Positions 585 through 19,336 of a DNA stretch of 64,000 nt are shown piece after piece. The notes beneath the pieces are model-generated. The model was not told the DNA's origin. It saw nothing but the letters and a program-made list of their open reading frames with translations, and did no database searches. Where the stretch lies: sequence record MW822008.1. One strand, written 5' to 3'. Position 1 is the first letter of the stretch. Every line of letters starts with the position of its first letter. The translations under genes and the position numbers were made by a program.

Positions 585-604
585 CCACCAGCACAAGCTG
601 GTGG
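585..604. other. Inverted pair of Chi sites
   Basis: CCACCAGC-ACAA-GCTGGTGG; GCTGGTGG is the enterobacterial RecBCD Chi sequence. Confidence 0.85.
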
Positions 605-616
605 ATTCCCTCTAAC

Positions 617-692
617 AGTATTCAGTACTACATGATAGTCTTCATCCTCCTAGGGTAACATAGTGAGGGCTATGATGGCAGTACTGAATACT
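617..692. repeat. Long imperfect inverted repeat
   Basis: Perfect 13-bp arms AGTATTCAGTACT/AGTACTGAATACT plus inner ATAGTCTTCAT/GTGAGGGCTAT stem. Confidence 0.75.
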
Positions 693-802
693 CCCTTTCA
701 AAAGATAGATCTATGGTATAGTACTGACGGATTTTGGGCGTAGTTACCCTGGATGGATTTTGGACGTAGATATGTCTAGCCCTCCAGAAGTCTGGAAGTA
801 AA

Positions 803-914
803 GATGGCTATCCATCTAGACGGCTAAACGGCTAGATTTCTGGATGGCTAGATGGCTAGACGTTTGGACGGCTAAACGGCTAGATGGTTACACGTCTGGA
901 AGTATAGACGGCTA
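803..914 (+). repeat. 8-bp-period tandem array, consensus (G/A)A(C/T)GGCTA
   Basis: 14 units in register at 803+8n; near-consensus units at 803, 819, 827, 843, 851, 867, 875, 883, 907. Confidence 0.85.
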
Positions 915-1074
915 AATCAAAATTTTATTTTGTTTTTCCAATAGTTCCCCTACCGCGTGGGGATAGTTTCCCCGCAGTATCTGGAGTTAGATTTTTCTGA
1001 ATCTGGAATCATTATCTTATAAACTGGGGGCAATGTCAACGACCTGGACGGATATTTTTAAAAATTTTTTCAGT

Positions 1075-1164
1075 ACTGAATTTTGGGCGTAACTATGCAC
1101 CCGGTGGGCTTGAGTCTTTCTCGACTTGATGGAACTATTATACAGTACTGAAAAAATAAAGCAA
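1075..1164 (-). ncRNA. sRNA family 1 unit with own promoter
   Basis: Minus-strand TTGCTT-16-TATAAT (1164-1137); GTC-GAGAAA-GAC hairpin; core CCCACCGGGTGCA (1108-1096). Confidence 0.6.
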
Positions 1165-1198
1165 TACCCTGGAAGCAAAAAAGTTTTAATTAATTTGC

Positions 1199-1286
1199 TT
1201 GCTATCCTGGGCCGGACTATGGTACTATATTTCAGTACTGAGAAAGTGCGTTTACCTGCTAGGGTGCGGGAGTGTATCCTTTTTTT
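1199..1286 (+). ncRNA. sRNA family 1 unit (variant core)
   Basis: TTGCTA..TACTAT promoter; GTACT-GAGAA-AGTGC hairpin; CCTGCTAGGGTGCGGGAGTGTATCC (1255-1279) then T7. Confidence 0.55.
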
Positions 1287-1294
1287 ATATCTTG

Positions 1295-1380
1295 AATTTT
1301 GGGCGTAATTTCGCACCCTCTGGGGTTTCCGCTTTCTCGCGTCTATGTAGTAATTATACGCTTTTTCAGGATCAAGTCAA
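1295..1380 (-). ncRNA. sRNA family 1 unit
   Basis: Minus-strand TTGACT-16-TATAAT (1380-1353); CGC-GAGAAA-GCG hairpin; core CCCCAGAGGGTGCG (1325-1312). Confidence 0.6.
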
Positions 1381-1756
1381 TACCTAAAAACAAAATAATT
1401 GAAAATAATTTAACGCGTTTAAACGGCCCGTAAAGCCCTGGAATGATTGGAATGGTGCAAATGTATAGCTTATGTGTATTAATGCGTTAGAATGCGTCTG
1501 AGGCCGTTTTACGGGGTATGGGGATGATTTGGTGGATTGATTCAGTACTGAATAATAGTACTACTATATAGAAAGATAGTTCCCCTGGATGGTTGCAGTA
1601 CTGAATGATAGTACTGAATAATAGTTCCCCTATATAGAAAGAAAACTATTTTAAAAGTATTTGTAGAAAGTACTTGCAAACTAAGTTTAACGGCGTATAA
1701 TGTTTTACATCGAGAGCGGGAACACTTCCCGCTACATATTACGAGAGATTAAAACG

Positions 1757-2119
1757 ATGGCGACTCAAATCACTAAAATTATTGCTAACCTGGTTAACTT
1801 TCGCGACGAGATGAAAGATCTTCCGGCAGAAACGGTAAAAATTCACATTTCAGCTTATCGGGAACTTATTGCAATGTTACCGCTTAAGCGTGAACAATAC
1901 GCCGCGACCGTGATGCTTGATGCGATGATCCATAAGATGATCGCCAGTGATTTAACGATGGTTTATCAGTATATGGGCGAAAATTTCGCGGTGTATAGTA
2001 AACCAGTACCAGGAATGGAAAGTACAGAAGTATTACACGGTTTAAATTTAAAACAAGATGCATGGGATAATATGCCTCGTTTCCTGGTATGGGCTGACAG
2101 TGGCAAAATTTACGAATAA
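1757..2119 (+). CDS. Early hypothetical protein
   Basis: ORF; start moved to the ATG after the cassette hairpin. Confidence 0.85.
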   Translation: MATQITKIIANLVNFRDEMKDLPAETVKIHISAYRELIAMLPLKREQYAATVMLDAMIHKMIASDLTMVYQYMGENFAVYSKPVPGMESTEVLHGLNLKQDAWDNMPRFLVWADSGKIYE

Positions 2120-2213
2120 GTTTAATAAAGTACTTGCAAACTAAGTTTAAAAGCGTATAATACTTTACATCAGGTGGGGAATAGTTCCCCACTATAATTA
2201 AGAGATTAATTTT

Positions 2214-2447
2214 ATGAGTACTATTTTAACTGTTTCTCAATCCGTTGCACTGACTGACCTATTAAACGCTTTAAGCCGTTGCACTGAGGTTGGCTTGTTT
2301 GATGTGGTTGACGTTGCACCGGACGTTATTAATCATTTTTGTGATGCGATGGAAGAATGTAAGGAAGATGATAGCCGTATGATGGCGGTCGCCTTTGAGG
2401 AAGTACAGCCGGGTGAGATCAAAGGTTTACCAGTACTGAAAAAATAG
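2214..2447 (+). CDS. Early hypothetical protein
   Basis: ORF after cassette promoter. Confidence 0.8.
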   Translation: MSTILTVSQSVALTDLLNALSRCTEVGLFDVVDVAPDVINHFCDAMEECKEDDSRMMAVAFEEVQPGEIKGLPVLKK

Positions 2448-2529
2448 TACTTGCAAACTAAGTTTAAAAGCGTATAATACTTTCTATCAGGTGGTGAATA
2501 GTTCCCCACTATATAAGAGGATTAAAAAA

Positions 2530-2769
2530 ATGGCTAAATCAAAAATGTTCTTAGGTCACAAAAACAAAACTCATTGGAATGTAAGCCTTTGGATTAATAA
2601 CGATGAGTCATTGTACCGGTTGGCCCAGGACTTTATTAATGATAGCACTAATCGCAATGATGCGGCCCGTCATATGATGCTATTTTTAGAACAGACTGGA
2701 CAAGATAAAACACCGGACGGATTCAAATATAGCACTACTGCGATCCGTGCGGCGATGGTTGGAATGTAA
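2530..2769 (+). CDS. Early hypothetical protein, paralog of 4570
   Basis: Shares GHKNKTxWNVSLWINNxESLYRLAQ and TPDGFKYSTTAIRAAMVGM. Confidence 0.85.
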   Translation: MAKSKMFLGHKNKTHWNVSLWINNDESLYRLAQDFINDSTNRNDAARHMMLFLEQTGQDKTPDGFKYSTTAIRAAMVGM

Positions 2770-2855
2770 TAGAATTTATTTAAAGTACTATCATTTTTTT
2801 GCGATAGTACTTTATAATAGTGTTTTATTCATACACCAACGATAAGGGTAACAGC

Positions 2856-3122
2856 ATGAATATTAAGTATTTTGCGACGCGTGAACAAGCTCGGATCGCC
2901 GCACGCCAGGACGGGGCAACGTTTAAAGATATGGGAGCGGGATCGGCAAGTGGTGAACGTTGGGCCATTGTAAAGCGTAGTACCGCCAGATCATTACAGT
3001 ACTGGTTAGCGGCGTTAAAAAGTCCCGATAGTGTATCGCGTCGAGTGGTAGAAATAAAGCTCGACCGAAAGGGCAACCGCGTGACCGTGTACCGTACTAA
3101 AAAGATTGCAGTACTTGAATAA
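2856..3122 (+). CDS. Early hypothetical protein, paralog of 15228
   Basis: Shares ATRExARIxARxxGAxFKDMG and DRKGNRVTVY. Confidence 0.8.
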   Translation: MNIKYFATREQARIAARQDGATFKDMGAGSASGERWAIVKRSTARSLQYWLAALKSPDSVSRRVVEIKLDRKGNRVTVYRTKKIAVLE

Positions 3123-3209
3123 AAAGTACTTGCAAACTATGTTTAATGGCGTATAATGTTTTACATCGAGAGCGGGAACACTTCCCGCCTATAACCTGGA
3201 GTAATAAAA

Positions 3210-3440
3210 ATGACTAATATGTATATGACTGAAGTTAAAACCGTAAAAGATACTACCACGAATAAAACTACTTACTTACAGCGGATCTGCGGTGTATGGC
3301 AACGTATCAGCAAATCAAAGTACTTTAAATTAACATCATATGCAAACCGTTCGGATTCATTCAGTACTGAAATAAAAGGTAATAAAGTACACCAATACGG
3401 CACTTATTATTATTATAGCCTGGACGCGATTGCAGTATAA
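3210..3440 (+). CDS. Early hypothetical protein
   Basis: ORF, GGAG RBS, cassette promoter. Confidence 0.8.
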   Translation: MTNMYMTEVKTVKDTTTNKTTYLQRICGVWQRISKSKYFKLTSYANRSDSFSTEIKGNKVHQYGTYYYYSLDAIAV

Positions 3441-3470
3441 GCAGTTTACAAATCTTTACAATTGCCGGTA

Positions 3471-3555
3471 TTGACTTATTTTGTCAGTACTGGCATAATG
3501 TATTCATTGGCAGATAAGCCGTAGCCCATAGGGTGCGGGAGTGTATCTATAGAAA
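3471..3555 (+). ncRNA. sRNA family 1 unit
   Basis: TTGACT-17-CATAAT; GGC-AGATAA-GCC hairpin; core CCCATAGGGTGCGGGAGTGTATCT (3525-3548). Confidence 0.6.
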
Positions 3556-3564
3556 AAGTAGTTT

Positions 3565-3643
3565 ATTACAGTTACAATTGTGCACCCGGTGGGTTAGCTG
3601 TTGTCATGGGGTATATTATGCCAGTACTTGATAATGCTGTCAA
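3565..3643 (-). ncRNA. sRNA family 1 unit
   Basis: Minus-strand TTGACA-17-CATAAT (3643-3615); core CCCACCGGGTGCACAATTGTAAC (3593-3571). Confidence 0.6.
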
Positions 3644-3723
3644 TACTTTTTTTACTATTCAGTACTGAAAACTATTTTTAAAAAGTACTTGCAAACTATG
3701 TTTAAAGGCGTATAATGTTTTAC

Positions 3724-3798
3724 ATCAGGACGGGGAACGAAATAAGTAACTCCCCGTTAAGTAGCCCAGGAGTAAGGCACACGAAAAACTCCCCTGAT
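3724..3798 (+). ncRNA. sRNA family 2 (three-way junction)
   Basis: Lies between two promoters with no ORF; stems ATCAGG/CCTGAT, ACGGGGA/TCCCCGT, GGAGT/ACTCC. Confidence 0.65.
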
Positions 3799-3866
3799 AA
3801 AATAGTTTGACAAATGTTTTTAAAAGCGTATAATACTTACATCAACTACTGAATGAGGGTTACAAA

Positions 3867-4478
3867 ATGAAAACTATCACTACTACTACTTTCGTTATGG
3901 ATTTTTCTGAATTGAACGCAGAACAAAAAACGTCAGCTATCGAACTGGTTCGGGAACGTGAAAAAAACTTAAACGATGATTATTTTTCTGAAAGTGAAAT
4001 TGAATACTATAAAGAAACAGTACTACCGGAATATGGCATTAATGACGCTGATTTACGTTTCAGTGGCTTTTGGTCCCAGGGTGACGGTGCATCAATCAGT
4101 ACTGACCACGTTGACGCAGTGAAGTTTTTACGCAAGGTAAGAGCATTAACTAAGTATCGCTCAATCCGTCACTTGCTGAATGAAGATGATTTGGCGATGA
4201 GTGTAAAGCGTTCTCACTCCCACTACTCGCATGAAAACACTGTAAGCGGGTACATTGAATCGGCTTACACTGATTTAACCGCAAAACAAGAAACGTTAGT
4301 TAATGAGCTTGAGGAACTACTCACTGAAACTATTCGTGAATTATCCCGCAAGTTGTACCGTGATTTAGAGAATGCATATGAGGATCAATTCACTACTGAA
4401 AACATTACGGCACTGATTGAGGGTAACGAATATCAATTCAATGTTATTGATGGCGTAGTAGAATCAATCGAATATTAA
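3867..4478 (+). CDS. Conserved protein of the FSGFWSQGDGA family (often auto-labelled antitoxin of TA stability system; function unproven)
   Basis: Motif FSGFWSQGDGAS and N-terminal FSELNAEQKTSAIE. Confidence 0.6.
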   Translation: MKTITTTTFVMDFSELNAEQKTSAIELVREREKNLNDDYFSESEIEYYKETVLPEYGINDADLRFSGFWSQGDGASISTDHVDAVKFLRKVRALTKYRSIRHLLNEDDLAMSVKRSHSHYSHENTVSGYIESAYTDLTAKQETLVNELEELLTETIRELSRKLYRDLENAYEDQFTTENITALIEGNEYQFNVIDGVVESIEY

Positions 4479-4569
4479 TTTAAAAAAGTACTTGCAAACT
4501 AAGTTTAAAAGCGTATAATACTTTATATCGAGGCGGGGAGTGGTTCCCCGCTCAAACGAGGATTTAAAA

Positions 4570-4809
4570 ATGGCTAGTTCTAAAACTTACAACGGGCACA
4601 AAAACAAAACTCAATGGAATGTAAGCCTTTGGATTAATAACGGTGAGTCATTGTATCGGCTTGCACAAAGTTGTATCGCACAAAGTAGAACTAAAGATAT
4701 TGCAGCGGAATGTATGTACCGCAGATTAAAAGCCAACGGTACTACTACAACGCCGGACGGTTTTAAGTATAGCACTACTGCGATCCGTGCTGCAATGGTT
4801 GGAATGTAA
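4570..4809 (+). CDS. Early hypothetical protein, paralog of 2530
   Basis: Shared motifs with 2530. Confidence 0.85.
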   Translation: MASSKTYNGHKNKTQWNVSLWINNGESLYRLAQSCIAQSRTKDIAAECMYRRLKANGTTTTPDGFKYSTTAIRAAMVGM

Positions 4810-4866
4810 TATTCAGTACTGAGATAATGGCGGGTAATAGTTCCCGCCTTTACTGAGGGTTATCTA

Positions 4867-5127
4867 ATGAGTAAAGTAATAAAGTACAATGTGTTAAGCA
4901 AATCATTGTCTATCAGTGAATGCACCGATGGTTTTTGGATGTACGATGAAACGCGTGGCATGAATTTAGCTATGCGTGCAAAAACTGCTGAGGCGGCGTA
5001 TATTCAAGCACTGGAATACTACCAGGAACGTTTAAAGGAAGTAGAAGAAGATTATAAAAGCCTCAAAGCGAAAGTAGATCATTTCGTCGGTCAATTCATC
5101 GAGGAAGACGACGACAAACAATATTGA
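4867..5127 (+). CDS. Early hypothetical protein
   Basis: ORF, GAGG RBS after hairpin. Confidence 0.8.
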   Translation: MSKVIKYNVLSKSLSISECTDGFWMYDETRGMNLAMRAKTAEAAYIQALEYYQERLKEVEEDYKSLKAKVDHFVGQFIEEDDDKQY

Positions 5128-5213
5128 AAAAGTACTTGCAATTAGTTTTCAGTACTGTATAATGGTTTACATCAAAGGGAGAAATGGTTCTCCCTGGTAA
5201 TGAGGAAAATAAA

Positions 5214-5435
5214 ATGGCTAATATCACTACTCTTTCCCAACTGGAAGCACTGGTTAAATCTATGCGGGAACATGCCGACAAAATCGGCGTACAAGATCCA
5301 GCCGTTTGCTTCTGCGACGAATTGAATGATGATACCCTGGTAATAGCAGAAGTCCAGGACGTTTCTAACTATTCATCGCGTTACACTGGCGGCGTAGCAA
5401 ATAAAGGTGACTTCTGTTTATACCTTACAAAATAA
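5214..5435 (+). CDS. Early hypothetical protein
   Basis: ORF; start after cassette hairpin. Confidence 0.8.
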   Translation: MANITTLSQLEALVKSMREHADKIGVQDPAVCFCDELNDDTLVIAEVQDVSNYSSRYTGGVANKGDFCLYLTK

Positions 5436-5440
5436 CAACG

Positions 5441-5470
5441 CGGGGAGATAATAACTCCCCGTTACTTTTT
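5441..5470 (+). terminator. Intrinsic terminator
   Basis: CGGGGAG/CTCCCCG stem then TTACTTTTT. Confidence 0.65.
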
Positions 5471-5479
5471 CAGTACTGA

Positions 5480-5570
5480 ATCATTTAATAGACGGATCTA
5501 TGCACCCGGTGGGTTAGTGACTGTTTCGTCTTGATGTAGTAATTATGCCAGTACTGGATGCACTTGTCAA
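5480..5570 (-). ncRNA. sRNA family 1 unit
   Basis: Minus-strand TTGACA-17-CATAAT (5570-5542); GAC-GAAACA-GTC hairpin; core CCCACCGGGTGCA (5513-5501). Confidence 0.6.
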
Positions 5571-5678
5571 CAACTATTTTTCAAATACTTTTTATTAAAA
5601 TACTTGCAATTAGTTTTTAAACGCGTATAATGTTTTGCATAGGGGGAGCGGTTCCCCTGGTAACTAAGGAATAATAAA

Positions 5679-5915
5679 ATGCTTGAACAAATCAAATCAA
5701 CGTCTTCGAATGTAACGGGAACGGTAGCACACTTTACTAGTGATGAATCGCGGGGCGTTCCCTATTGTGCTGTACATGTAAACACTGAGGGTAACTACTG
5801 GTTTACGGTTTACGGATCATATTCATTTGGACGGCCAGGGCATCAAAAAATTCTGGATAAAGTACAACCAACGGGTAAAAATATCACTGCTGAAATGTTT
5901 TATAAAAAATCATAA
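5679..5915 (+). CDS. Early hypothetical protein
   Basis: ORF, AGGA RBS. Confidence 0.8.
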   Translation: MLEQIKSTSSNVTGTVAHFTSDESRGVPYCAVHVNTEGNYWFTVYGSYSFGRPGHQKILDKVQPTGKNITAEMFYKKS

Positions 5916-5999
5916 AGTACTTGATAATAGTTTTTAGTACTGTATAATATTTTACATCGCAAGGGGGAGCGGTTCCCCCTGGTAACTAAGGATAATCAA

Positions 6000-6299
6000 A
6001 TGAAAATTGCAATCATCGCCCTGGCTTTATCTGTTTCCTCTTTCGCTGTTAATGCGTCATTAGATGTAAGTAGTGAAAAATTCATTCAGTGCACTGTTGC
6101 AATGACCGATGAAAGTACTGGCGAGATTGTTTTAAAGGATTTAGAGATCCAGCCGGAAGCATTTAAAAACGGGCCGTTCCATGAAGAAGACGAAAAAGGT
6201 AGCACGACAATTTATTACGATGCAAGTACTAAACGCGGTTCGGTCACTGTTATGGATACTGAGAAAGTAACTCATACTGGCGTTATTAATTGCCGTTGA
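6000..6299 (+). CDS. Exported protein with signal peptide
   Basis: MKIAIIALALSVSSFAVNA Sec-type leader. Confidence 0.75.
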   Translation: MKIAIIALALSVSSFAVNASLDVSSEKFIQCTVAMTDESTGEIVLKDLEIQPEAFKNGPFHEEDEKGSTTIYYDASTKRGSVTVMDTEKVTHTGVINCR

Positions 6300-6320
6300 T
6301 ATATACTACGGGGTAACATC

Positions 6321-6551
6321 ATGACTAAGCGAATTGTTTTACTTAACGAAAGCAGTACTACACAACTACTTAACGCCGTGCATTATGATATTGAAACGAG
6401 CGTTAATCTTATCAGTACTGTAGTACTGTTGGACACTGGAAAGGTCGCCAATGATAAAGCGATTGCAGGTATACTAACGGATCTTGAGCCTGGTAGCAGT
6501 GCATCAATAACGTTAAATGGTAAAGTGTTTAACATTTTACTTACTGATTAA
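6321..6551 (+). CDS. Early hypothetical protein
   Basis: ORF. Confidence 0.75.
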   Translation: MTKRIVLLNESSTTQLLNAVHYDIETSVNLISTVVLLDTGKVANDKAIAGILTDLEPGSSASITLNGKVFNILLTD

Positions 6552-6557
6552 GTACAT

Positions 6558-6579
6558 AGCCCACCTGGTGGGCTTTTTT
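6558..6579 (+). terminator. Intrinsic terminator
   Basis: AGCCCAC/GTGGGCT plus T-run. Confidence 0.85.
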
Positions 6580-6668
6580 GTTTTTGTAGTATCGTAGTAC
6601 TGAGATACTTTGAAAATAGTTTTAAAAAAGTAGTTGACATTACCGCAGAAAAGCGTAGAATGTATTAC

Positions 6669-6741
6669 ATCAAGACGGGGAGCACTAAGTAGACCGCCAG
6701 TAAGTCGAACGAAAAACTGGACACGTCGAGAAAACTTTGAT
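6669..6741 (+). ncRNA. sRNA family 2 variant forming the 5' leader of gene 6785
   Basis: ATCAAG/TTTGAT closing stem, TAAGTAG linker, CCAGT/ACTGG stem with AAG-N4-ACGAAAA loop. Confidence 0.55.
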
Positions 6742-6784
6742 ACACTAATAAACGTAAACTAAACTTTAATTGAGGATTTATAAA

Positions 6785-7267
6785 ATGGCTAATGTAAAAT
6801 CATTCATCAAAGCACTGGTAGCAAATGAAACTAACGTCGCGGCTGAGATCCTGGCTGAACTGGATAACGATACCATGAAAGCGGTACGCAATAATTTTAA
6901 CATCGCGTACAGTACTGCGAAAGAACTACAAGCAAATAAAGCGGCAGAAATTGAAGCGGCAAAGGCGGCCCGTGAAGCAGAACTACAAGCAACAATCGAA
7001 AGTATTCAGGCGGCAGTAGTTGGATTGGATCTGGAAGTAGTTACAGAGATGGCACAAAAAGCCCTGGCGGTTAAGTATGGGGAAGACAAGCCAGAAGTAA
7101 AAGCCAAAAAATGGATTCAGGAACGCGTAGCGGTAGTACTGGACAACGGGGAAGAATATCTGATTCCGGTGCGTGGTAACTGCATTGCGGTAGTACTGGA
7201 CGCGATTAACTCCAGTGGTATGACTCGCGAGGAATGGATCGAAGCTCATCGCAAAGTTGAAGCATAA
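6785..7267 (+). CDS. H-NS-like protein (tentative)
   Basis: Ala/Glu coiled coil, GLD linker, C-terminal DNGE..RGN..AV...A....G.....W, resembling the H-NS DNA-binding domain by eye. Confidence 0.45.
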   Translation: MANVKSFIKALVANETNVAAEILAELDNDTMKAVRNNFNIAYSTAKELQANKAAEIEAAKAAREAELQATIESIQAAVVGLDLEVVTEMAQKALAVKYGEDKPEVKAKKWIQERVAVVLDNGEEYLIPVRGNCIAVVLDAINSSGMTREEWIEAHRKVEA

Positions 7268-7288
7268 CAATTAAAGTACTGAATCACT

Positions 7289-7314
7289 AGCCCACTTATA
7301 CAGTGGGCTTTTTT
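7289..7314 (+). terminator. Intrinsic terminator
   Basis: AGCCCACT/AGTGGGCT plus T-run. Confidence 0.85.
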
Positions 7315-7333
7315 GTGTTTATCGTTTACCAGG

Positions 7334-7424
7334 CCACCAGCACCGCCTAGAAACGATTCTAACGCATTAAACTGATTATCTGATGCATCACCCTAGCTGG
7401 TGGCGTTAAGGTCGTTAGAATGCG
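7334..7424. other. Intergenic island with an inverted Chi pair and ATTCTAACG/CGTTAGAAT inverted repeat
   Basis: CCACCAGC 7334-7341, GCTGGTGG 7396-7403, arms at 7356 and 7413. Confidence 0.75.
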
Positions 7425-7551
7425 ATTGAGTGCGTTTAAAGTATTTTACAAAAAGTAATAAAAAGTACTTGCACGATTAAGAGATTAGCGTATAATGTTT
7501 TACATCGAGAGGGGGAAACGGTTCTCCTTCCAAATCAAAGGAATCAAAACA

Positions 7552-7779
7552 ATGGCTATTATCATTACTCGCGTATCTGGTACTACTGGCAACGAACAAG
7601 TAGTTGCAGTCATTACCAACAAGGAAGGTGCGGAATTGCAAAATGCAATGAATACCTGGGCCGTTAATGAGTTCGGTCAGTGGGCAAGTGTAGCATACAT
7701 TGAAACCTATCAAGTGCCGTCGATTAGTTTAACTGATTTGGGCGTTGAGCGTATCCTTTGCCTTGATGAATTAAATTAA
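7552..7779 (+). CDS. Early hypothetical protein
   Basis: ORF; start after hairpin. Confidence 0.8.
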   Translation: MAIIITRVSGTTGNEQVVAVITNKEGAELQNAMNTWAVNEFGQWASVAYIETYQVPSISLTDLGVERILCLDELN

Positions 7780-7865
7780 AAAAGTACTTGCAAAGTAAAT
7801 CGAATAAAGTATAATACATTACATCAAGGGGAGAAAATGGTTCTCCCCACTACAAGGAAACTAAA

Positions 7866-11932: not shown

Positions 11933-12015
11933 TTGACAATATCCTCCAGTACTGGCATAATACTTACATCAAGACGAGAACGTCACTAACCCATAGGGTG
12001 CACAAATGTAACTGT
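11933..12015 (+). ncRNA. sRNA family 1 unit
   Basis: TTGACA-17-CATAAT; GACG-AGAA-CGTC hairpin; core CCCATAGGGTGCACAAATGTAAC (11990-12012). Confidence 0.6.
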
Positions 12016-12259
12016 ATAATATTGATCAAAAAATGATCTGATCAATACTTGATCAATTTGCGTAAAGTAGTATAATTCTATGCAGTTGGTTAGACGAAAG
12101 GTTATGATTAGTAGTGCAAGTGTATAAAAATTTTCATGGTGTATCGTTCCGCACATATGGCAATGAATATGTGGTATCATGTGGATTGGAAAAAGTAAGA
12201 ACAAGTAATATTATTGTCGCATTACAGTACTATAGTATTTTTATAATGAGGTTAAAATA

Positions 12260-12517
12260 ATGGCTGTAGGATTCGCGAAAGATGGGGCCGAACAAGACGA
12301 GATTAACGCAGTGATTCAGGCCGCCGTTAACCACGCTAGAAAGCAAATTAACGCACAAATAGAATCACTGATACATTGCCTCGACTGCGGCGATATAATC
12401 CCTGAGAAACGACGCCAGGCCGTTAAGGGATGTAAGTACTGCATAACTTGCCAGGAGGATCATGATAGTACTTTTAAACGTCCCCCGCGTAATTGTTGGC
12501 ATAGATCTATGAGATAA
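12260..12517 (+). CDS. DksA/TraR C4 zinc-finger protein (YbiI-like)
   Basis: MAVGFAKDGAEQDEI N-terminus; CLDCGDIIPEKRRQAVKGCKYCITCQ. Confidence 0.9.
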   Translation: MAVGFAKDGAEQDEINAVIQAAVNHARKQINAQIESLIHCLDCGDIIPEKRRQAVKGCKYCITCQEDHDSTFKRPPRNCWHRSMR

Positions 12518-12592
12518 AAAGTATTGACAGTACTATCCAGTAGTGTTATAGTACTTACATCAAGGGGAAACATCTTCCCCTACTAAGAGGAA

Positions 12593-12787
12593 ATGAAAAT
12601 GGAAAACTTATCAAGTATTTTAGTACAAGATGATTTCGGTAATCCTGGAAGTGCTATCATTGTTCGGGGTAATAAAGCAACATTTGTTATTGCTGGTGGA
12701 CCTGTACAGCGTAGCATTAAAAACAATGCCGTTACTATTAATAATGTACGCTATCGCTTAGATAAAGAATTGATTCATAAACTGTAA
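12593..12787 (+). CDS. Early hypothetical protein
   Basis: ORF. Confidence 0.75.
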   Translation: MKMENLSSILVQDDFGNPGSAIIVRGNKATFVIAGGPVQRSIKNNAVTINNVRYRLDKELIHKL

Positions 12788-12814
12788 TATTAATTTAATA
12801 GAGGATAACAATAA

Positions 12815-13138
12815 ATGTACATTCATACTACTATCACAAAGGAAGTCCGTTGCCAGTTCGAAAGTATTCCGGGCGTATGTTTCATCACTGGTACGTTTTC
12901 CCCTGGTGATCGTGATAATCCAGTACTGTTACAATTACGCCATCCATCATGGGATAAAGCATTTGATCTACCGTTGAATGAATTCGCAACTACTGCTGAA
13001 AAGTACATTAAAAATATTCGCGAGAATGATCGACTATTCATTAATGCTTTCAGTGATTCCGCGTTAAGCGAGATCCACAGCGTATTGGTTGCAATCATGG
13101 AATCAATGGAGAAAACTAAATTCAAACAAGGTGAATAA
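12815..13138 (+). CDS. Early hypothetical protein
   Basis: ORF, GAGG RBS. Confidence 0.8.
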   Translation: MYIHTTITKEVRCQFESIPGVCFITGTFSPGDRDNPVLLQLRHPSWDKAFDLPLNEFATTAEKYIKNIRENDRLFINAFSDSALSEIHSVLVAIMESMEKTKFKQGE

Positions 13139-13221
13139 AAACTATTGACAAGATAATCTAGTACTGTATAATAAGTTACATGAAGGGGAGAAATGATTCT
13201 CCCCACTGAGAGGAAAGAAAA

Positions 13222-13434
13222 ATGCAAGGTCAACTAATCGTTCGTAAATGGTCTGATACTAACGCTAAACCGTGGGATGTACAATACATCGGACCGGATG
13301 GGGTATCACGTTATCAGCCTGGCGTAACGCATAGTACTGAGCAATATGCCGCCGCTCACCGCGAACGCCTGTTAGAATCCATGAAACAGGGATACGGTGA
13401 AAAATTCATTCAAGATCATTGGCTGAAAGATTAA
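13222..13434 (+). CDS. Early hypothetical protein
   Basis: ORF, GAGG RBS. Confidence 0.8.
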   Translation: MQGQLIVRKWSDTNAKPWDVQYIGPDGVSRYQPGVTHSTEQYAAAHRERLLESMKQGYGEKFIQDHWLKD

Positions 13435-13451
13435 TATAAGGAGTACAGCTT

Positions 13452-13544
13452 ATGCAAATGAATCCGATGATTATTGTGTTAGCTGTACTTATGATCATTC
13501 ATGCAATAGTAAAAGTATTAACGCAATCAGGAGTAATAAAATGA
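13452..13544 (+). CDS. 30-aa membrane peptide
   Basis: AAGGAG RBS; hydrophobic. Confidence 0.55.
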   Translation: MQMNPMIIVLAVLMIIHAIVKVLTQSGVIK

Positions 13545-13714
13545 TTCAAGTAGAATTATCAGTACTGAAAGATCTGTTTTATCGGTTAGGTACTACTGGC
13601 GAGTATCCTAAAAGTGATACCGCAAAACTTTTTGTATCACTCGACTTATGGCAACGCGAACAATTAGTAATGTCCTGGCGTAAAGGTAAAGCAGATAGCG
13701 AGGTGAAAGCATGA
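13541..13714 (+). CDS. 57-aa early protein
   Basis: AGGAG RBS; ATGA overlaps at both ends. Confidence 0.7.
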   Translation: MIQVELSVLKDLFYRLGTTGEYPKSDTAKLFVSLDLWQREQLVMSWRKGKADSEVKA

Positions 13715-13860
13715 AAGAATTCTTATTCGAAGTAGTGTTTCAAGGTGTCGGTAGTAACCAACTGATTCGCTCAAGTGGTTATAATGTTAACCAGGCATGG
13801 AATAACATTAAACAAATGTACCCGAACGCTATCACCTATCGCAACCCGAAAGAAGTTTAA
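13711..13860 (+). CDS. 49-aa early protein
   Basis: GAGGTG RBS; ATGA overlap; terminator follows. Confidence 0.7.
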   Translation: MKEFLFEVVFQGVGSNQLIRSSGYNVNQAWNNIKQMYPNAITYRNPKEV

Positions 13861-13878
13861 AAATATTTGAAAAAGGGA

Positions 13879-13967
13879 TTGACTCCGGTCAGTCCCTTTG
13901 CTATTATATACGCATAGAAACAAATCAGCCCACAGGGTGCATAAATGTATCTATTGTTTGCTGGTGG
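13879..13967 (+). ncRNA. sRNA family 1 unit
   Basis: TTGACT-17-TATTAT; core CCCACAGGGTGCATAAATGTATCT (13929-13952); Chi at 13960. Confidence 0.6.
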
Positions 13968-14033
13968 CTAGTACTGAAAACTATTTTTAAAAAAGTACTT
14001 GCATTGTACTTAGAATCAAGTATAATGTTTTAC

Positions 14034-14106
14034 ATCAGGACGGGGAACGAAACAAGTAACCCCGTTAAGTAGTCCAGGAGTAAGACATAAGAAAACCTCC
14101 CCTGAT
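14034..14106 (+). ncRNA. sRNA family 2 (three-way junction)
   Basis: Same stems and linker as 3724; lies between two promoters with no ORF. Confidence 0.65.
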
Positions 14107-14175
14107 AAAATAGTTTGACAATAGAAAGTAAACGAGTATAATACTTACATCAACCACTGATAAGGAAACATTAAA

Positions 14176-14451
14176 ATGCGGATTCTACTGACAGCTAACG
14201 AAATCGAACAAGTACTGACTACTAACCTGGAAGACTGGAAACGTGAAGCAGATATCCAGGCGGTTCAACTGCTTAACGATAAGTTAACGCCGGATGACTT
14301 AAGCAAGATTGTAGATCCTCAATTCTACGAAGATATCCACGACACCGCGTTAAGCGTCGAGGATGTACTAGATAAGCACTACATTGATATTGATTTGCAG
14401 GTTTACGGTCGTAAAAACTTTATCACTATTCACGACATTTATAATAATTAA
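14176..14451 (+). CDS. Early acidic hypothetical protein
   Basis: ORF, AAGGA RBS. Confidence 0.8.
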   Translation: MRILLTANEIEQVLTTNLEDWKREADIQAVQLLNDKLTPDDLSKIVDPQFYEDIHDTALSVEDVLDKHYIDIDLQVYGRKNFITIHDIYNN

Positions 14452-14537
14452 GTATTGACAAAGTATCTTAGTACTGTATAATAGTTTACATCGAGAGGGG
14501 GAATGGTTCCCCTCCTAACAAAGAGAGAGAAATAAAA

Positions 14538-14720
14538 ATGGCTAAATGCACTATCTGCAAGAAAGAAATAGTATTAGTTCCAAGTGCCCGTGAACGTGCC
14601 GCTCGGTTCGGTGGCAAAGCGTCAGACTATACAAAAATGTTTACTACCCATGCAGCTTGCCAGGTAGCAAAACGTTCACAAGAAAGCGTAGAATTAATGC
14701 GTAAACTTTCCAAAAAATAA
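14538..14720 (+). CDS. Small zinc-finger-like protein
   Basis: CTIC...HAAC. Confidence 0.7.
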   Translation: MAKCTICKKEIVLVPSARERAARFGGKASDYTKMFTTHAACQVAKRSQESVELMRKLSKK

Positions 14721-14808
14721 GTATTGACAAAGTATCTTAGTACTGTATAATAGTTTACATCAAGTGAGGGGAAACGGTTCCCCTCCTAACAAAGAGAGAG
14801 AAATAAAA

Positions 14809-15132
14809 ATGGCTATGATCCTTGCCCAGAAAGTAGAACTGAAAATTGTAACCTCCTTTGACATTAAAGTTAATCGGTGGACTGATTCACACGGCAATAC
14901 TTACCACTCTTGCTACGTGTCCGCGTTAATTGGCGACCGCTGGGAAGACTTGGGACATGAAACCTTTACTTACGGTTACGGTACACAAGGAGAATACACG
15001 GGCTTGGAGATCATTAAAGAAACCGTTATAGGTTTCAACCCGAAAGAAAAAGTTATTCACCGCATCGAAAAAGAGATTAACAAAGAAATAACAGTTCGCT
15101 ACTACGATGTAAAACGTAAGAAAGACATGTAA
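14809..15132 (+). CDS. Early hypothetical protein, paralog of 8391
   Basis: Shared motifs with 8391. Confidence 0.85.
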   Translation: MAMILAQKVELKIVTSFDIKVNRWTDSHGNTYHSCYVSALIGDRWEDLGHETFTYGYGTQGEYTGLEIIKETVIGFNPKEKVIHRIEKEINKEITVRYYDVKRKKDM

Positions 15133-15227
15133 TAGAATCCATTTAAAGTACTATTTGACATTGCCCAGATAGTACTTTATAATAGACTCTAACTTGTAGT
15201 ACTAACTCAACTAATAGGATGTATACC

Positions 15228-15623
15228 ATGATTACTAAATTCTACGCTACCCGTGAAGCTGCCCGTATTGTTGCACGCGAGGAAGGAGCAGCATTTAAAG
15301 ACATGGGCAAAGATGCACCGAAAGGTCAACGCTGGGCCGTACAGTTCAAAGAAATCTCTGATATTGTGAATTCACCTGAGCCAGTACTAACAGCAGCAGA
15401 ACTAAAACGAGCGGATTTACTGGCGGCAGTACTTAACGCACAAGATGAATTTATCGCTGATTCTGATATCAAAGTACAGACAAACCATACCGCTTGGACT
15501 CACGCGGATCACCTGGCAAACCTTAAGCGTCCAAGTGAACTGGTTCGCAACCAGAAAGAGATCCGACACGACCGTAAGGGTAATCGTGTAACAGTATACA
15601 GTAAACGCCGCCAGGTTATCTAA
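15228..15623 (+). CDS. Early hypothetical protein, paralog of 2856 with a longer middle
   Basis: Shared N- and C-terminal motifs with 2856. Confidence 0.8.
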   Translation: MITKFYATREAARIVAREEGAAFKDMGKDAPKGQRWAVQFKEISDIVNSPEPVLTAAELKRADLLAAVLNAQDEFIADSDIKVQTNHTAWTHADHLANLKRPSELVRNQKEIRHDRKGNRVTVYSKRRQVI

Positions 15624-15645
15624 TAACTTGCAGTACTAACAACAC

Positions 15646-15670
15646 GGCGGGATCAGTTCCCGCCTTTTTT
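15646..15670 (+). terminator. Intrinsic terminator
   Basis: GGCGGGA/TCCCGCC plus T6. Confidence 0.85.
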
Positions 15671-15685
15671 ATAGGATAAACTAAA

Positions 15686-15940
15686 ATGATTAAGGTACAA
15701 CTATCTAAAGATAATATCTTGCGGGTACACTATAAAGCACCACAGAGAATCATCACAAAGGCCGTACAGCTTGCTAATGAGTTTATTAATGGTAACCTAT
15801 TACCAAGGAAGTTAAGCAACGGAAAACTGCGTGTAATCGATGTAGACACTAACAACAGAATAGTAATTGAGAACACAGGAAAGATAAACCTATATGAACA
15901 CCAACAATATAATAAGAAAATAAAACTAATATCACGTTGA
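15686..15940 (+). CDS. ParE/RelE-like toxin-fold protein (tentative)
   Basis: 84 aa, basic; KA..L...F..G...PR.L......I.V....R......G...L..H..YN pattern. Confidence 0.45.
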   Translation: MIKVQLSKDNILRVHYKAPQRIITKAVQLANEFINGNLLPRKLSNGKLRVIDVDTNNRIVIENTGKINLYEHQQYNKKIKLISR

Positions 15941-15993
15941 CAGTACTCAATTGTTTTAGTATTATGTACACATACCAACACGGGAGAAACAAA

Positions 15994-16212
15994 ATGAAAT
16001 TATCTAAAATCGAAAAGAAAACTATTGATGAAGCAGTTAAGCACGGTTATACCTTTCGTAATGATTCACATTTTACCAATTTTCAACAAGGCCAAAGGAC
16101 TATTAAAAAACTAATTGACAAAGGTTTATTAGTTAAAGTAGATAACGGTAACGGCATTGAGTATCAGCCAACCCAAGACGCATTATCTTTAAAGAAATAT
16201 GCAATTATCTAA
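15994..16212 (+). CDS. Early hypothetical protein (possible winged helix)
   Basis: ORF; TIKKLIDKGLL segment. Confidence 0.7.
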   Translation: MKLSKIEKKTIDEAVKHGYTFRNDSHFTNFQQGQRTIKKLIDKGLLVKVDNGNGIEYQPTQDALSLKKYAII

Positions 16213-16269
16213 TTGACAGTACTCAAATGTTTTAGTACTATATGTACATACCAACACGGGGAAAACAAA

Positions 16270-16512
16270 ATGATTACTTTAGAAAAACGTATCAAAGAAA
16301 CTACATCGCTGGTGGAACTGTTAACAGTACTGAAATGCCGTACTACTCGGTTTAGTACACCGGACTTTATTAATATGGTTGATGTTAACGGTCGTTATCG
16401 CATTGCAGTAGAACATGGAACAGCGAAAGTATTCAGTACTAAAAACACTAAGGAAGTGATTCACGCGGTTAGTGTGAAAAAAGTGGTTGCCATTGATAGT
16501 AAAGTACTGTAA
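16270..16512 (+). CDS. Early hypothetical protein
   Basis: ORF; promoter/leader duplicated from the 15994 gene. Confidence 0.75.
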   Translation: MITLEKRIKETTSLVELLTVLKCRTTRFSTPDFINMVDVNGRYRIAVEHGTAKVFSTKNTKEVIHAVSVKKVVAIDSKVL

Positions 16513-16543
16513 GATAGTTTCATTAACTCAAGGAGAACATGCA

Positions 16544-17128
16544 ATGCGTAATTATACTAAATTCATCCGTACCCTGTCAGAAATGGAAACCAACAAAGAG
16601 ATCCTTTCAGCTTGTCGGTTAGCTGGTCTGGAGATCATCGGTGCGGGTTCTTCCCGTATTGTATTCGCTTTAAATGATCGGTTAGTGATTAAGGTCGCCA
16701 ATTGTGATGCGGGTGTAGAACAAAATGAAACTGAATGTAAGGTATGGAATTTTTTAGACTATGACCGCCCTCAATTGAAACAGTACTTTGCAAAGGTGCA
16801 TATGCATTTATGCGATCCTGATAATATGTTTATCGTTATGGATCGGTTGAGTACTGCAAGCAAAGGCAGTGTAAAGCACGTTAACGCGTGCAACGAATTA
16901 AAGTACAATATTAAACGTAATGCCATTGAACGCCAGCACCGCTTTGCTGATGCACTACAACACGTCGATGATACATTATCAACACTAACGATAAGAGATA
17001 TCAGAAAACAGAATATCGGCCAGGATCGTAATGGACTTATTAAAGTACTTGATTACGGTTTAACCCGCAATATCTGGAATCAGTACTATAAAAAGCGTGA
17101 TGTGGCAGCAAGTAAAGTAACACGATAA
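16544..17128 (+). CDS. Protein-kinase-like enzyme
   Basis: IGAGSSRIVF Gly-loop, VIKVA Lys, NETE alphaC Glu, RDIRKQNIG catalytic loop, VLDYG. Confidence 0.85.
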   Translation: MRNYTKFIRTLSEMETNKEILSACRLAGLEIIGAGSSRIVFALNDRLVIKVANCDAGVEQNETECKVWNFLDYDRPQLKQYFAKVHMHLCDPDNMFIVMDRLSTASKGSVKHVNACNELKYNIKRNAIERQHRFADALQHVDDTLSTLTIRDIRKQNIGQDRNGLIKVLDYGLTRNIWNQYYKKRDVAASKVTR

Positions 17129-17146
17129 AAAAGATTAAAAAAGGGA

Positions 17147-17235
17147 TTGATTTCGGTCAGTCCCTTTGCTATTATATATTCATTGAGAGATAGCTCACTG
17201 ACCCACAGGGTGCATAAATGTATCTATTATATAAG
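17147..17235 (+). ncRNA. sRNA family 1 unit
   Basis: TTGATT-17-TATTAT; TGAG-AGATAG-CTCA hairpin; core CCCACAGGGTGCATAAATGTATCT (17202-17225). Confidence 0.6.
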
Positions 17236-17351
17236 TATTCAGTACTGAAAACTATTTTTAAAAAGTACTTGCATTGTACTTAGAATCAAGTATAATGTTT
17301 TATATCGAGAGGGGGGGAACGGTTCTCCCTCAAAGAATAAGGAATAAAATC

Positions 17352-17573
17352 ATGACTACAATGACTTGCATTTACGCTTCCAATCTTCTGAATGATGCGG
17401 CCTTTAATGTTGATTCAGAATATCAATGTTATCGGGATGAAAATAAAAAAGTTTTTGTAGTTGATAATAATGGTTTCCATATTGAAATACAATCCGGCTT
17501 CACTGGTGTTGATGGTAAATCAGTATGGGGCGTACAGGATGATAACGGTACATATCATTTTAAACGTAATTAA
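17352..17573 (+). CDS. Early hypothetical protein
   Basis: ORF; start after hairpin. Confidence 0.8.
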   Translation: MTTMTCIYASNLLNDAAFNVDSEYQCYRDENKKVFVVDNNGFHIEIQSGFTGVDGKSVWGVQDDNGTYHFKRN

Positions 17574-17657
17574 GTATTGACAAAGTATCTTAGTACTGTA
17601 TAATAGTTTACATCAAGGGGAGAATAGTTCTCCCCGATACTAAAAGGAAACAAAATT

Positions 17658-17930
17658 ATGTCCAGCTACTCCGCTACTATGATCATTAAAGATATGAACG
17701 GTAATCCTACTTCCGCTGGTGGATCATTTGGAAACATTAATTTAGATGGTCGGTTATCCATGCAATCAGCCATCGATGCAGCGAAAGAAGTTTTTAAGAA
17801 TGAATGCACTGTAAGCAAGCTGGATTATATGGGATTCGCTATCGAGAAAACTAATCGTTTTGTGAACTACAAAAATCCACTGATGATTGATACTAACCTG
17901 AAAGCTAACGAAGTGGAATACTTATTATGA
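17658..17930 (+). CDS. Early hypothetical protein
   Basis: ORF. Confidence 0.8.
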   Translation: MSSYSATMIIKDMNGNPTSAGGSFGNINLDGRLSMQSAIDAAKEVFKNECTVSKLDYMGFAIEKTNRFVNYKNPLMIDTNLKANEVEYLL

Positions 17931-18118
17931 CAGTTGAAGAAGTTAAAAAAGTACTGGCAGTACTACGCTATCATAATCATTGCAAGGTGAAGAATGATCC
18001 TGATTATGTTGATTCATCCCTGGAGGAAGACACATTAAACGCAATAAGCCATATGCAAACATTAGCAAAGCGTATGACCGAAAAGAATAGACCGGACTAT
18101 ATCGGAAATAAAATTTAA
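17927..18118 (+). CDS. Early hypothetical protein
   Basis: ORF, ATGA overlap. Confidence 0.75.
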   Translation: MTVEEVKKVLAVLRYHNHCKVKNDPDYVDSSLEEDTLNAISHMQTLAKRMTEKNRPDYIGNKI

Positions 18119-18204
18119 AAAGTACTTGCATTGTAGTTAGATTAACGTATAATGTTTTACATAGAGCGGGGGAATAGTTCTCCCGCCAGTCCAGGAGATA
18201 CACC

Positions 18205-18468
18205 ATGAACACTATCGAAATCACTATCAATGCACACGTATACGACAACGTAGTACTGCAAACTACTATGACCGCTAACGATACCAGTACTTTGCGGAAT
18301 ACTGTTATTAGTGCCGTATGTGCCGCTATCGGTGATGTCGCCCTGGAAAATGCAAAACACGTAAACGATGGTTTCACTATGTGCAAACGTGATAACGCAA
18401 AACATATCATCGTGGAAGGTTACGGCGGTGTAGAATTTAATGTTTATATGAAAAAAGTACTTGCATAA
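18205..18468 (+). CDS. Early hypothetical protein
   Basis: ORF, AGGAG RBS. Confidence 0.8.
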   Translation: MNTIEITINAHVYDNVVLQTTMTANDTSTLRNTVISAVCAAIGDVALENAKHVNDGFTMCKRDNAKHIIVEGYGGVEFNVYMKKVLA

Positions 18469-18535
18469 TAACTAAAACAAAGTATAATGTTTTGCATAGG
18501 GGGAGATGTCCTCCCCCACTAAAAGGAGTAATAAA

Positions 18536-18760
18536 ATGGCTAACTTTGATGAACTGATGCGGGAAGTAGCTAACCTGGCAGAAGAGAAAAAATCATTCGA
18601 TTCTATCTATAACACCTCTTACCGTGATTCAGTACTGGCATGTAACCAGGATCAAAAAGATGAACTAATCGCCACCTATCATGAAGCATGGAAGTACTAC
18701 CGACAATGGGAGAAAGAAGAAAGAGAGTCTACCATTGACGGCCTCAATAATCTAATCTAA
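18536..18760 (+). CDS. Early hypothetical protein
   Basis: ORF, AAGGAG RBS. Confidence 0.8.
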   Translation: MANFDELMREVANLAEEKKSFDSIYNTSYRDSVLACNQDQKDELIATYHEAWKYYRQWEKEERESTIDGLNNLI

Positions 18761-18836
18761 AAGTTTTATTTCAGTACTATTGACATAGCTTGATAGTACT
18801 GATGTAATAACTTTACTAACTACAAGGGGAAACATC

Positions 18837-19094
18837 ATGGAACAATTCACACAATATCGGGTAAATCCTCAAGCTATGGCCTACGTAGAAGACCATAAAA
18901 CGTTACCAGTACTGCAACCAGTTAAAGGCCATATCTATCGTGCAATGTCGTGGAGTACGGCCCAGGATGGCTATAAAACCGTAGCCGTTGGTATGTACTG
19001 CGGTAATGGTGAATGGTTTGATCCAAATAATCCGGTAGCCATTGACAGTACTGAAAAAATGAAATGGGCCGACTACATCGAAGATATTTCATAA
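18837..19094 (+). CDS. Early hypothetical protein
   Basis: ORF. Confidence 0.8.
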   Translation: MEQFTQYRVNPQAMAYVEDHKTLPVLQPVKGHIYRAMSWSTAQDGYKTVAVGMYCGNGEWFDPNNPVAIDSTEKMKWADYIEDIS

Positions 19095-19113
19095 AAAGAA
19101 TAAAAAAAAGGAG

Positions 19114-19195
19114 TTGACTTCGGTCCGCTCCTTTAGTACTATATACGCATAGAAACAAATCAGCCCACAGGGTGCATAAGTGTATCCAAAATATA
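19114..19195 (+). ncRNA. sRNA family 1 unit
   Basis: TTGACT-17-TACTAT; core CCCACAGGGTGCATAAGTGTATCC (19164-19187). Confidence 0.6.
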
Positions 19196-19336
19196 TAGTT
19201 AATAACGGTGAGTAACTATCTGCTGGTGGAACTAAAACTATTAATAAAAAAGTATTGACAAAGTATATCAGTACTGCAATAATGTATCTCGTAGGGCGGC
19301 AATGGTGCGACGGCCCACAAAGTTAGGAGATTCAAA

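Follow-up and report, generated by a model that had tools for sequence, protein, structure and literature searches.

Chi octamers in the direct terminal repeat of Escherichia phage BF17 and of related jumbo phages

The genome of Escherichia phage BF17 (Asteriusvirus, MW822008.1) carries ten copies of the Chi octamer GCTGGTGG in its first 20.6 kb, and all of them lie within a direct terminal repeat (DTR). This cluster was analysed in a window comprising bases 1-64000 of the 383,493-bp record, which names E. coli B73 as host and a pig farm as source. Chi is the octamer read by E. coli RecBCD. It attenuates the nuclease of the enzyme and promotes the loading of RecA on the 3’ tail. Judged by its counts, its specificity and its conservation, the Chi octamer is shown to be under selection in phages whose hosts read Chi, and this selection is limited to the terminal repeat. 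We favour, with moderate confidence, the explanation that selection has kept all ten as genuine Chi sites and that they stand in the DTR because host RecBCD would meet the phage DNA there.

Ten Chi sites in the terminal repeat of BF17

For the repeat comparison and a genome-wide Chi count the remainder of the BF17 record was retrieved and the full record rebuilt. Bases 1-20590 recur at 362904-383493 with 0 mismatches, so that the same sequence stands at both genome ends. These bases therefore form a DTR, namely that of a linear 383-kb virion genome. An earlier interpretation made from the letters of the window (the sequence-only reading) had supposed such a terminal repeat conditionally. The supposition holds, with all ten clustered Chi sites inside the DTR, and the location at a physical DNA end is supported by the exact duplication, by published PhageTerm and restriction data and by boundaries shared with relatives. 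The authors of BF17 predicted a DTR of ~20.5 kb using PhageTerm (PMC10059673). For the relatives, the DTR of fEgEco12 (20,993 bp) was confirmed by PhageTerm and restriction digests (PMC13070987), that of Sharanji (20,668 bp) was predicted by PhageTerm (PMC11895373), and the record of vB_Ec-M-J carries an annotated DTR of 21,525 bp. BF17, vB_Ec-M-J and fEgEco12, which were sequenced independently, have an identical repeat start and an identical repeat end.

The positions given by the sequence-only reading, eight on the plus and three on the minus strand of the window, proved exact. They include its single site outside the cluster, which is the only one in the 43 kb past the repeat. Its number of intergenic sites has to be raised from six to seven out of ten according to the record annotation. 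Both of its inverted pairs were recovered, the first (585/597) as a perfect 20-bp palindrome and the second (7334/7396) as an inverted repeat whose 9-bp arms are separated by ~52 nt. The features are listed below; sites were located by octamer search and assigned to genes or intergenic regions with the help of the record annotation (CDS, coding sequence).

1-20590, no strand: left copy of the 20,590-bp DTR, with an exact duplicate at the record end and all ten clustered Chi sites inside
585-604, no strand: perfect 20-bp palindrome of two facing Chi sites with a 4-nt loop, a bidirectional Chi element ~0.5-0.6 kb from the left terminus
585-592, minus: Chi, intergenic, the first met by RecBCD from the left end
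597-604, plus: Chi, intergenic, the last plus site reached by an enzyme that crosses a DTR copy from its right end
7334-7341, minus: Chi, intergenic, the second and last site for entry from the left and the sole site varying among relatives
7396-7403, plus: Chi, intergenic, 3’ of a terminator-like hairpin at 7289-7309
11647-11654, plus: Chi, intergenic, overlapping the 3’ arm of an AGCCCAC/GTGGGCT hairpin
12692-12699, plus: Chi in CDS 12599-12787, read GCT GGT GG
13960-13967, plus: Chi, intergenic, upstream of a promoter at 14115
16308-16315, plus: Chi in CDS 16270-16512, read CTG GTG
17715-17722, plus: Chi in CDS 17658-17930, read GCT GGT GGA
19222-19229, plus: Chi, intergenic, 26 nt upstream of a -35 hexamer at 19255, the first met from the right end, 1,369 bp inside
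60094-60101, minus: Chi outside the cluster and not a member of it, antisense inside a plus strand open reading frame (59925-60170)

The window holds 11 Chi sites in 64 kb, whereas 100 dinucleotide shuffles gave a mean of 0.42 and at most 2. Under Markov models of order 1-4 the first 20.6 kb should have 0.14-0.33 sites on the plus and 0.04-0.11 on the minus strand, and at least ten sites have a Poisson P of ~1e-11 under the order-3 model. Across the non-redundant genome of 362,903 bp Chi occurs 34 times, ten times in the DTR (20,590 bp; 8 plus, 2 minus) and 24 times in the other 342,313 bp (13 plus, 11 minus). This genome-wide count, which the sequence-only reading had proposed as a check, supports its view of a local concentration. 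A similar density elsewhere, which would have spoken against that view, was not found, as the values are 0.49/kb in the DTR and 0.07/kb, i.e. ~7-fold lower, outside it (DTR versus remainder, binomial P 1.3e-5; scan-statistic P 0.0016).

The enrichment is specific for the exact octamer. In the BF17 DTR Chi ranks first among 168 composition-matched octamers with 10 copies versus a mean of 0.31, the runner-up reaching 5. It is likewise first of 168 in the DTRs of vB_Ec-M-J, fEgEco12, the Klebsiella phage fENko-Kae01 and the Pectobacterium phage CBB, and the mean of the other octamers is 0.17-0.32 across the five DTRs. The 24 one-mismatch neighbours of Chi have 3 copies in total in the BF17 DTR.

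The 342-kb unique part behaves differently. Here the 24 copies of Chi compare with 30 of GGTGCTGG, 23 of GGTGGTGC and 33 of GGTGGTGG. Moreover, 22-23 of the 24 sites are genic, mostly co-oriented with the gene, whereas the DTR has only 3 genic sites among its ten (Fisher P 2e-4 to 7e-4). Since sibling octamers are as frequent and the sites are genic, the Chi count of the unique part looks like codon usage (Gly/Ala/Leu-Val), and the exact octamer is enriched in the repeat only. An excess of Chi outside the repeat (24 versus ~10.6 expected, P 3e-4) was considered and rejected as not specific for Chi, sibling octamers being equal or commoner and the sites genic. Five minus strand Chi sites at 341325-346899 of the record fall into two of ~16 tandem paralogous minus strand genes, some of which bear the RCC1-like annotation ‘regulator of chromosome condensation’; the Chi count of the unique region is inflated by this duplication of paralogues.

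Within the repeat the sites occupy varied settings. Two form the palindrome, three lie in spacers between hairpin and promoter (7396, 13960 and 19222), one in a hairpin arm (11647) and three in genes, in two reading frames. The flanks of the ten sites have no extended motif in common. The variety of settings argues against one regulatory element that merely contains Chi. The palindrome at 585-604 itself has a predicted hairpin energy of -10.7 kcal/mol (z = -3.1).

Conservation, recurrence and orientation of the Chi sites

Conservation was assessed in seven Asteriusvirus genomes, i.e. BF17 and six relatives, one of which infects Salmonella. At orthologous positions all ten BF17 sites are present in vB_Ec-M-J and fEgEco12, and nine of ten in Sharanji. 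Summed over the six relatives, mismatches amount to 2 in 448 nt of Chi versus 548 in 11,077 nt (4.95%) of the flanks (±100 nt). Both mismatches are the variant GCTAGTGG at the 7334 site, in Sharanji and ph0011. Counted per alignment column, 1 of 80 Chi columns is variable versus 259 of 1,826 flank columns (14%; one-sided Fisher P 9e-5). A clear example is the site at 16308, the octamer of which is intact in all six relatives with flanks that are ~10% different. Neither arm of the pair at 585/597 varies in 7 genomes, among them that of the Klebsiella phage fENko-Kae01, while the sequence around the pair diverges. The relatives also have additional Chi sites, one in a small gene absent from BF17 and one in a divergent allele; by these alignments the Chi sites of the DTR therefore show turnover besides retention.

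The loop of the palindrome (593-596) varies. It reads ACAA in BF17, vB_Ec-M-J and SD-2_S15, whereas fEgEco12, Sharanji and JNE01 have its reverse complement TTGT and fENko-Kae01 has TTAA. Such a flip of the loop suggests that the palindrome has inverted, i.e. that it may extrude or switch templates in vivo.

The cluster recurs in other genera. For fENko-Kae01 and CBB the Chi count covered the first 50 kb. The former has a PhageTerm-annotated DTR at 1-19736 with 14 Chi sites (12 plus, 2 minus) versus 2 in the next 30 kb, the latter a DTR at 1-22456 with 9 sites (7 plus, 2 minus) versus 3 in the next 27.5 kb. Within the genus of BF17, fEgEco12 shows 12 sites in the repeat and 0 in the following 29 kb. 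If G+C-rich octamers are ranked, Chi is first in the fENko-Kae01 repeat and among the top four in that of CBB. Only the inverted pair of fENko-Kae01 (484/496) aligns with a BF17 site; the remaining sites of this phage and all sites of CBB are located in non-homologous sequence. The phages with the same Chi cluster infect E. coli, Salmonella, Klebsiella and Pectobacterium. PA5oct, a Pseudomonas phage distantly placed in the same clade, has 0 copies of GCTGGTGG in its 39-kb repeat and the next 11 kb. The octamer therefore tracks enterobacterial hosts and not the phage lineage. The reported Pseudomonas Chi-like sequence GCTGGCGC has just 1 copy in the 39-kb DTR of PA5oct and is not enriched.

A scan of IMG/VR for the inverted pair, written as CCACCAGC-N4-GCTGGTGG, returned 46 loci, mostly on contigs of 5-90 kb and one on a contig of 348 kb. 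By a rough estimate that was not computed, this is close to the chance level for a collection of such a size.

RecBCD reads Chi on the strand whose 3’ end lies at the entry point, approaching from the 3’ side of Chi. The orientation logic of the sequence-only reading, with minus sites read from the left end and plus sites from the copy at the right end, is correct by this established mechanism. An enzyme entering from the right end meets plus sites at 1.4, 2.9, 4.3, 6.6, 7.9, 8.9, 13.2 and 20.0 kb, one entering from the left end meets minus sites at 0.6 and 7.3 kb, the next minus site being at 60 kb. In all three genera the minus sites are nearer to the left end than the plus sites (Mann-Whitney P 0.003-0.007). 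The strand ratio in the BF17 DTR is 8:2, a bias no larger than strand composition predicts, since the Markov expectation already favours the plus strand by ~3:1 owing to its G-richness. If a recognition probability of 0.2-0.4 per site is assumed, eight sites would stop 83-98% of the enzymes and two sites 36-64%.

A proposed role in RecBCD-dependent recombination and competing explanations

RecBCD is the first nuclease that a linear phage genome meets, and the textbook answers of phages are protein inhibitors or end caps. To our knowledge a DNA-encoded answer to RecBCD has so far come from the temperate phage P1 and some lambdoid phages. For BF17 we propose the following course. Host RecBCD would load on the free duplex ends of the linear genome and degrade it while unwinding. 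On reading 5’-GCTGGTGG-3’ from the 3’ side the nuclease would be attenuated and RecA loaded on the 3’ tail. RecBCD coming from the right end would meet eight plus sites, the first of them 1.4 kb in, and RecBCD from the left would meet 585 and then 7334. In a single infection the other repeat copy would be the only homologous partner for the RecA-coated tail, so that Chi would be of use only within the repeat. This would lead to protection of the ends together with recombination of repeat with repeat, circularising or concatenating the genome for replication. As a side benefit, fewer RecBCD degradation products would be available to CRISPR systems as a source of spacers. We infer that this account, with RecBCD, RecA and recombination, would explain why the Chi sites stop at the repeat boundary, which pure protection does not.

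Three further facts are consistent with this account. A homologue of the T4 gp2-type end protector was not detected in BF17 by tblastn (E value ~1), a weak negative given that the protein evolves fast, and the gp4-like gene has tail-tube genes beside it. In the close relative fEgEco12, restriction enzymes cut the DNA in the predicted way (PMC13070987). Because of this normal cutting, fEgEco12 DNA is probably not heavily modified and hence readable by RecBCD. The authors of fEgEco12 propose circularisation via the repeats and do not mention Chi (PMC13070987).

Several points weigh against our proposal. BF17 is annotated with a UvsX/RecA-like ‘recombination and repair protein’ of its own (record 228456-229574) and with gp46/47-like recombination nuclease subunits (record 196214-199405), and according to the rule described for lambdoid phages, those with their own Rec functions carry few Chi sites (PMC12315714). 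A terminal protein or an unrecognised RecBCD inhibitor may be present among the ~500 unknown proteins of BF17. The left end has just two correctly oriented sites. The excess of plus over minus sites had to be discarded as independent functional evidence, since 26:5 (independent sites, three genera) compares with an expected 3:1 at P 0.30. PA5oct has no host-matched octamer cluster, so the strategy is not clade-wide. The conservation statistics correct for shared ancestry in part only. Finally, the BF17 termini rest on the PhageTerm prediction of its authors and on the relatives, 24 public runs being available as assembled contigs only. Four contig sets from such runs show no molecule ends and a flat assembler depth over 17600-23590, which is uninformative for contigs.

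In one competing explanation Chi serves protection only. The sites would act as a ‘self’ disguise against RecBCD on injected or packaging-stage DNA, with less CRISPR capture, and the repeats would be recombined by phage enzymes independently of Chi. The annotated UvsX/RecA-like protein and the gp46/47-like subunits fit such a division of labour, as does the failure to detect a gp2-type protector, and the evidence from clustering and conservation is the same as for the recombination account. However, a RecBCD enzyme that misses the sites of the repeat enters unique DNA with no plus site for 48 kb, and the stop of the sites at the repeat boundary is left unexplained. Moreover RecA loading belongs to the same Chi switch, which makes it difficult to tell one effect from the other. 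We regard protection alone as unlikely. In another explanation the relevant ends are not the injected ones but arise in the course of replication and packaging. Here terminase would cut the concatemer at the repeat and the eight plus sites would halt RecBCD moving leftward from the unpackaged end into the upstream unit. Chi orientation relative to cos plays a comparable role in lambda. The strong excess of plus sites, concentrated toward the right repeat boundary in all three genera, is as this explanation would have it, and a dependence on Chi orientation is reported for lambdoid phages (PMC12315714). Yet the plus excess is explained by composition, the conserved minus sites near the left end are not accounted for, and the argument depends on the packaging direction and the mode of repeat duplication. 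We consider this role in packaging somewhat less likely still.

The remaining explanations dispense with RecBCD. The octamer might be a signal intrinsic to the phage, e.g. a binding site for a phage or host protein of the early region, its identity with Chi being coincidental. The region is densely regulated and also contains repeats of other kinds, among them CAGTACTG boxes and AGCCCAC/GTGGGCT hairpins, one of the latter being overlapped by a Chi site. A binding site of this kind is nevertheless difficult to reconcile with flanks lacking an extended motif, with sites spread over hairpins, spacers and two reading frames, and with the near absence of one-mismatch variants. In addition, the exact host Chi recurs at non-homologous places in three phage genera with Enterobacterales hosts and is not found in the Pseudomonas relative. 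We thus hold a coincidental identity to be highly improbable. Chance or a by-product of composition could be considered, as the G+C content of the repeat exceeds that of the remaining genome (38.4% versus 35.1%) and its GC skew is positive. But Markov models up to order 4 expect ≤0.4 sites, matched octamers average 0.3 copies with 5 as the next highest count, and the octamers are conserved next to flanks with 14% variable columns and recur in other genera. The compositional explanation is effectively refuted.

A broader version of the recombination account can be put forward tentatively. In Rak2-like jumbo phages of Enterobacterales the DTR may possibly be a Chi-armoured recombination cassette that redirects RecBCD, instead of inhibiting it, by signals placed only where a homologous partner exists. 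A protein inhibitor of RecBCD can trip host defences that watch the enzyme. Redirection by DNA signals would avoid defences sensing its inhibition, the conserved palindromic two-way Chi near the left terminus would limit the resection that is tolerated, and RecBCD would be the host factor that starts circularisation or concatemer formation in a virulent phage with its own recombinase.

Known systems and further features of the repeat

The closest precedent is P1, which likewise infects E. coli, has linear virion DNA with terminal redundancy and shows a local Chi density similar to or above the 0.49/kb of BF17. As summarised in PMC12315714 with reference to Subramaniam and Smith 2022, P1 has ~50 Chi sites, most of them in or near the terminal repeats, which are thought to stimulate needed RecBCD/RecA recombination. 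In the first 50 kb from lox, the part that was counted, we find 27 Chi sites, 23 of them within 22 kb. In other respects the two phages differ. P1 has a genome of 94 kb with 47% GC, is temperate, packages by headful with variable redundancy and is cyclised by Cre-lox, whereas BF17 is a virulent jumbo phage of 363 kb with 35% GC and a fixed repeat of 20.6 kb. Unlike in P1, the BF17 cluster is confined to the repeat, mostly intergenic, and includes a conserved palindromic Chi pair.

In Chi-rich lambdoid phages (LLS type) Chi is far above chance and non-random in orientation and location, which was read as selection for the use of host RecBCD (PMC12315714). These phages are without a Rec module of their own and without anti-RecBCD genes (PMC12315714), whereas BF17 has recombination proteins; they are furthermore cos phages without long repeats, in contrast to the long DTR of BF17. 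Thus BF17 resembles P1 and the LLS type in its Chi excess and the location at DNA ends but departs from the lambdoid rule of having no Rec module. The coliphage T5 is similar in having an exact DTR (10,219 bp) with pre-early host-takeover genes and strong host-type promoters (record annotation). It differs by nicks, two-step injection, an unrelated sequence and just 2 Chi sites in the repeat. The latter lie at 8127 and 8689 of the left repeat, both plus and 1.5-2.1 kb from the right boundary, slightly above chance (repeat only counted). T4 gp2, lambda Gam and T7 gp5.9 answer the same problem of exposed ends by end-capping or inhibitor proteins, while the proposed BF17 solution would be a DNA signal that redirects RecBCD and does not block it. 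The E. coli chromosome has one Chi per 4.6 kb (PMC12315714), so with 1 per 2.1 kb the DTR has about twice the chromosomal density. Chromosomal Chi sites are largely genic and oriented with replication, in contrast to the mostly intergenic sites of the DTR in AT-rich DNA.

In the literature library that was searched, no paper ties RecBCD or Chi to this group of jumbo phages or to the repeats they carry. A Chi strategy in virulent jumbo phages would offer a testable system for survival of RecBCD, for separating protection from the start of replication, and for the avoidance of defences that sense inhibition. The system is a clean one, as the cluster keeps within a repeat of fixed sequence and 20 kb, shows conservation of its nucleotides and occurs at different positions in three genera. 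On the practical side, the Chi cluster marks the terminal repeat in the many Asteriusvirus assemblies that were deposited without mapped ends, and these phages are under development for biocontrol of E. coli, which makes a dependence on host rec functions worth knowing.

The sequence at the repeat boundary (20578-20603 and 1-21) is shared in part. BF17, vB_Ec-M-J and fEgEco12 start with identical bases, which include a small hairpin at 2-21, and in all three the repeat closes with ...TAACCT, the next bases being T(T)AGCGAC. In fENko-Kae01 and CBB the repeat likewise terminates with ...CCT/GCT, and TAGC comes next. By comparison of these ends the boundary looks like a cut-site motif kept across genera. 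Directly to the right of the boundary, 580 nt of BF17 (20592-21171, holding CDS 20723-21088) are replaced by 93 nt in contigs of relatives from four public runs, and this difference begins exactly at the repeat boundary. The BF17 record is flagged ‘circular’ despite containing both repeat copies. The large terminase is represented by two overlapping CDSs (record 224186-224527 and 224490-225827), a split that could reflect a frameshift, an intron or an annotation artefact. Among the matches to a query with the BF17 repeat are 13 ‘Campylobacter phage’ records (host C. jejuni). This host label is unexpected and may be due to mislabelling or mixed samples.

The gene content of the repeat can be summarised by two features.

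1-1756, no strand: left-terminal non-coding region, the first annotated CDS starting at 1757, with CAGTACTG boxes, the inverted Chi pair and a repeat of 8-bp periodicity
1757-20438, plus: array of ~51 small genes, all rightward (record annotation)

The DTR is 64% coding. Most of its genes are preceded by a near-consensus sigma-70 promoter, ten being perfect and many near-perfect, all on the plus strand. Because of these promoters the array suggests an early host-takeover region. In PA5oct the genes of the DTR are highly transcribed early (PMC7318152). The ten largest proteins of the BF17 DTR match only PHROG families without known function, and a kinase-like match for the product of 16544-17128 was weak and below threshold and was rejected.

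Two further repetitive elements were noted. The left-terminal non-coding region contains at 754-913 a repeat with a periodicity of 8 bp, consisting of ~20 GGCTAGAC-like units, which could serve in packaging, as an origin or for protein binding. AGTACT, a palindromic hexamer, is found 135 times in the 20.6-kb repeat (6.6/kb) and 853 times in the 342-kb unique genome (2.5/kb), with an expectation of roughly 0.3/kb from base composition. It is mostly embedded in CAGTACTG, in the promoter spacer directly upstream of the -10 hexamer, and could be an operator or promoter element or be tied to restriction/modification.

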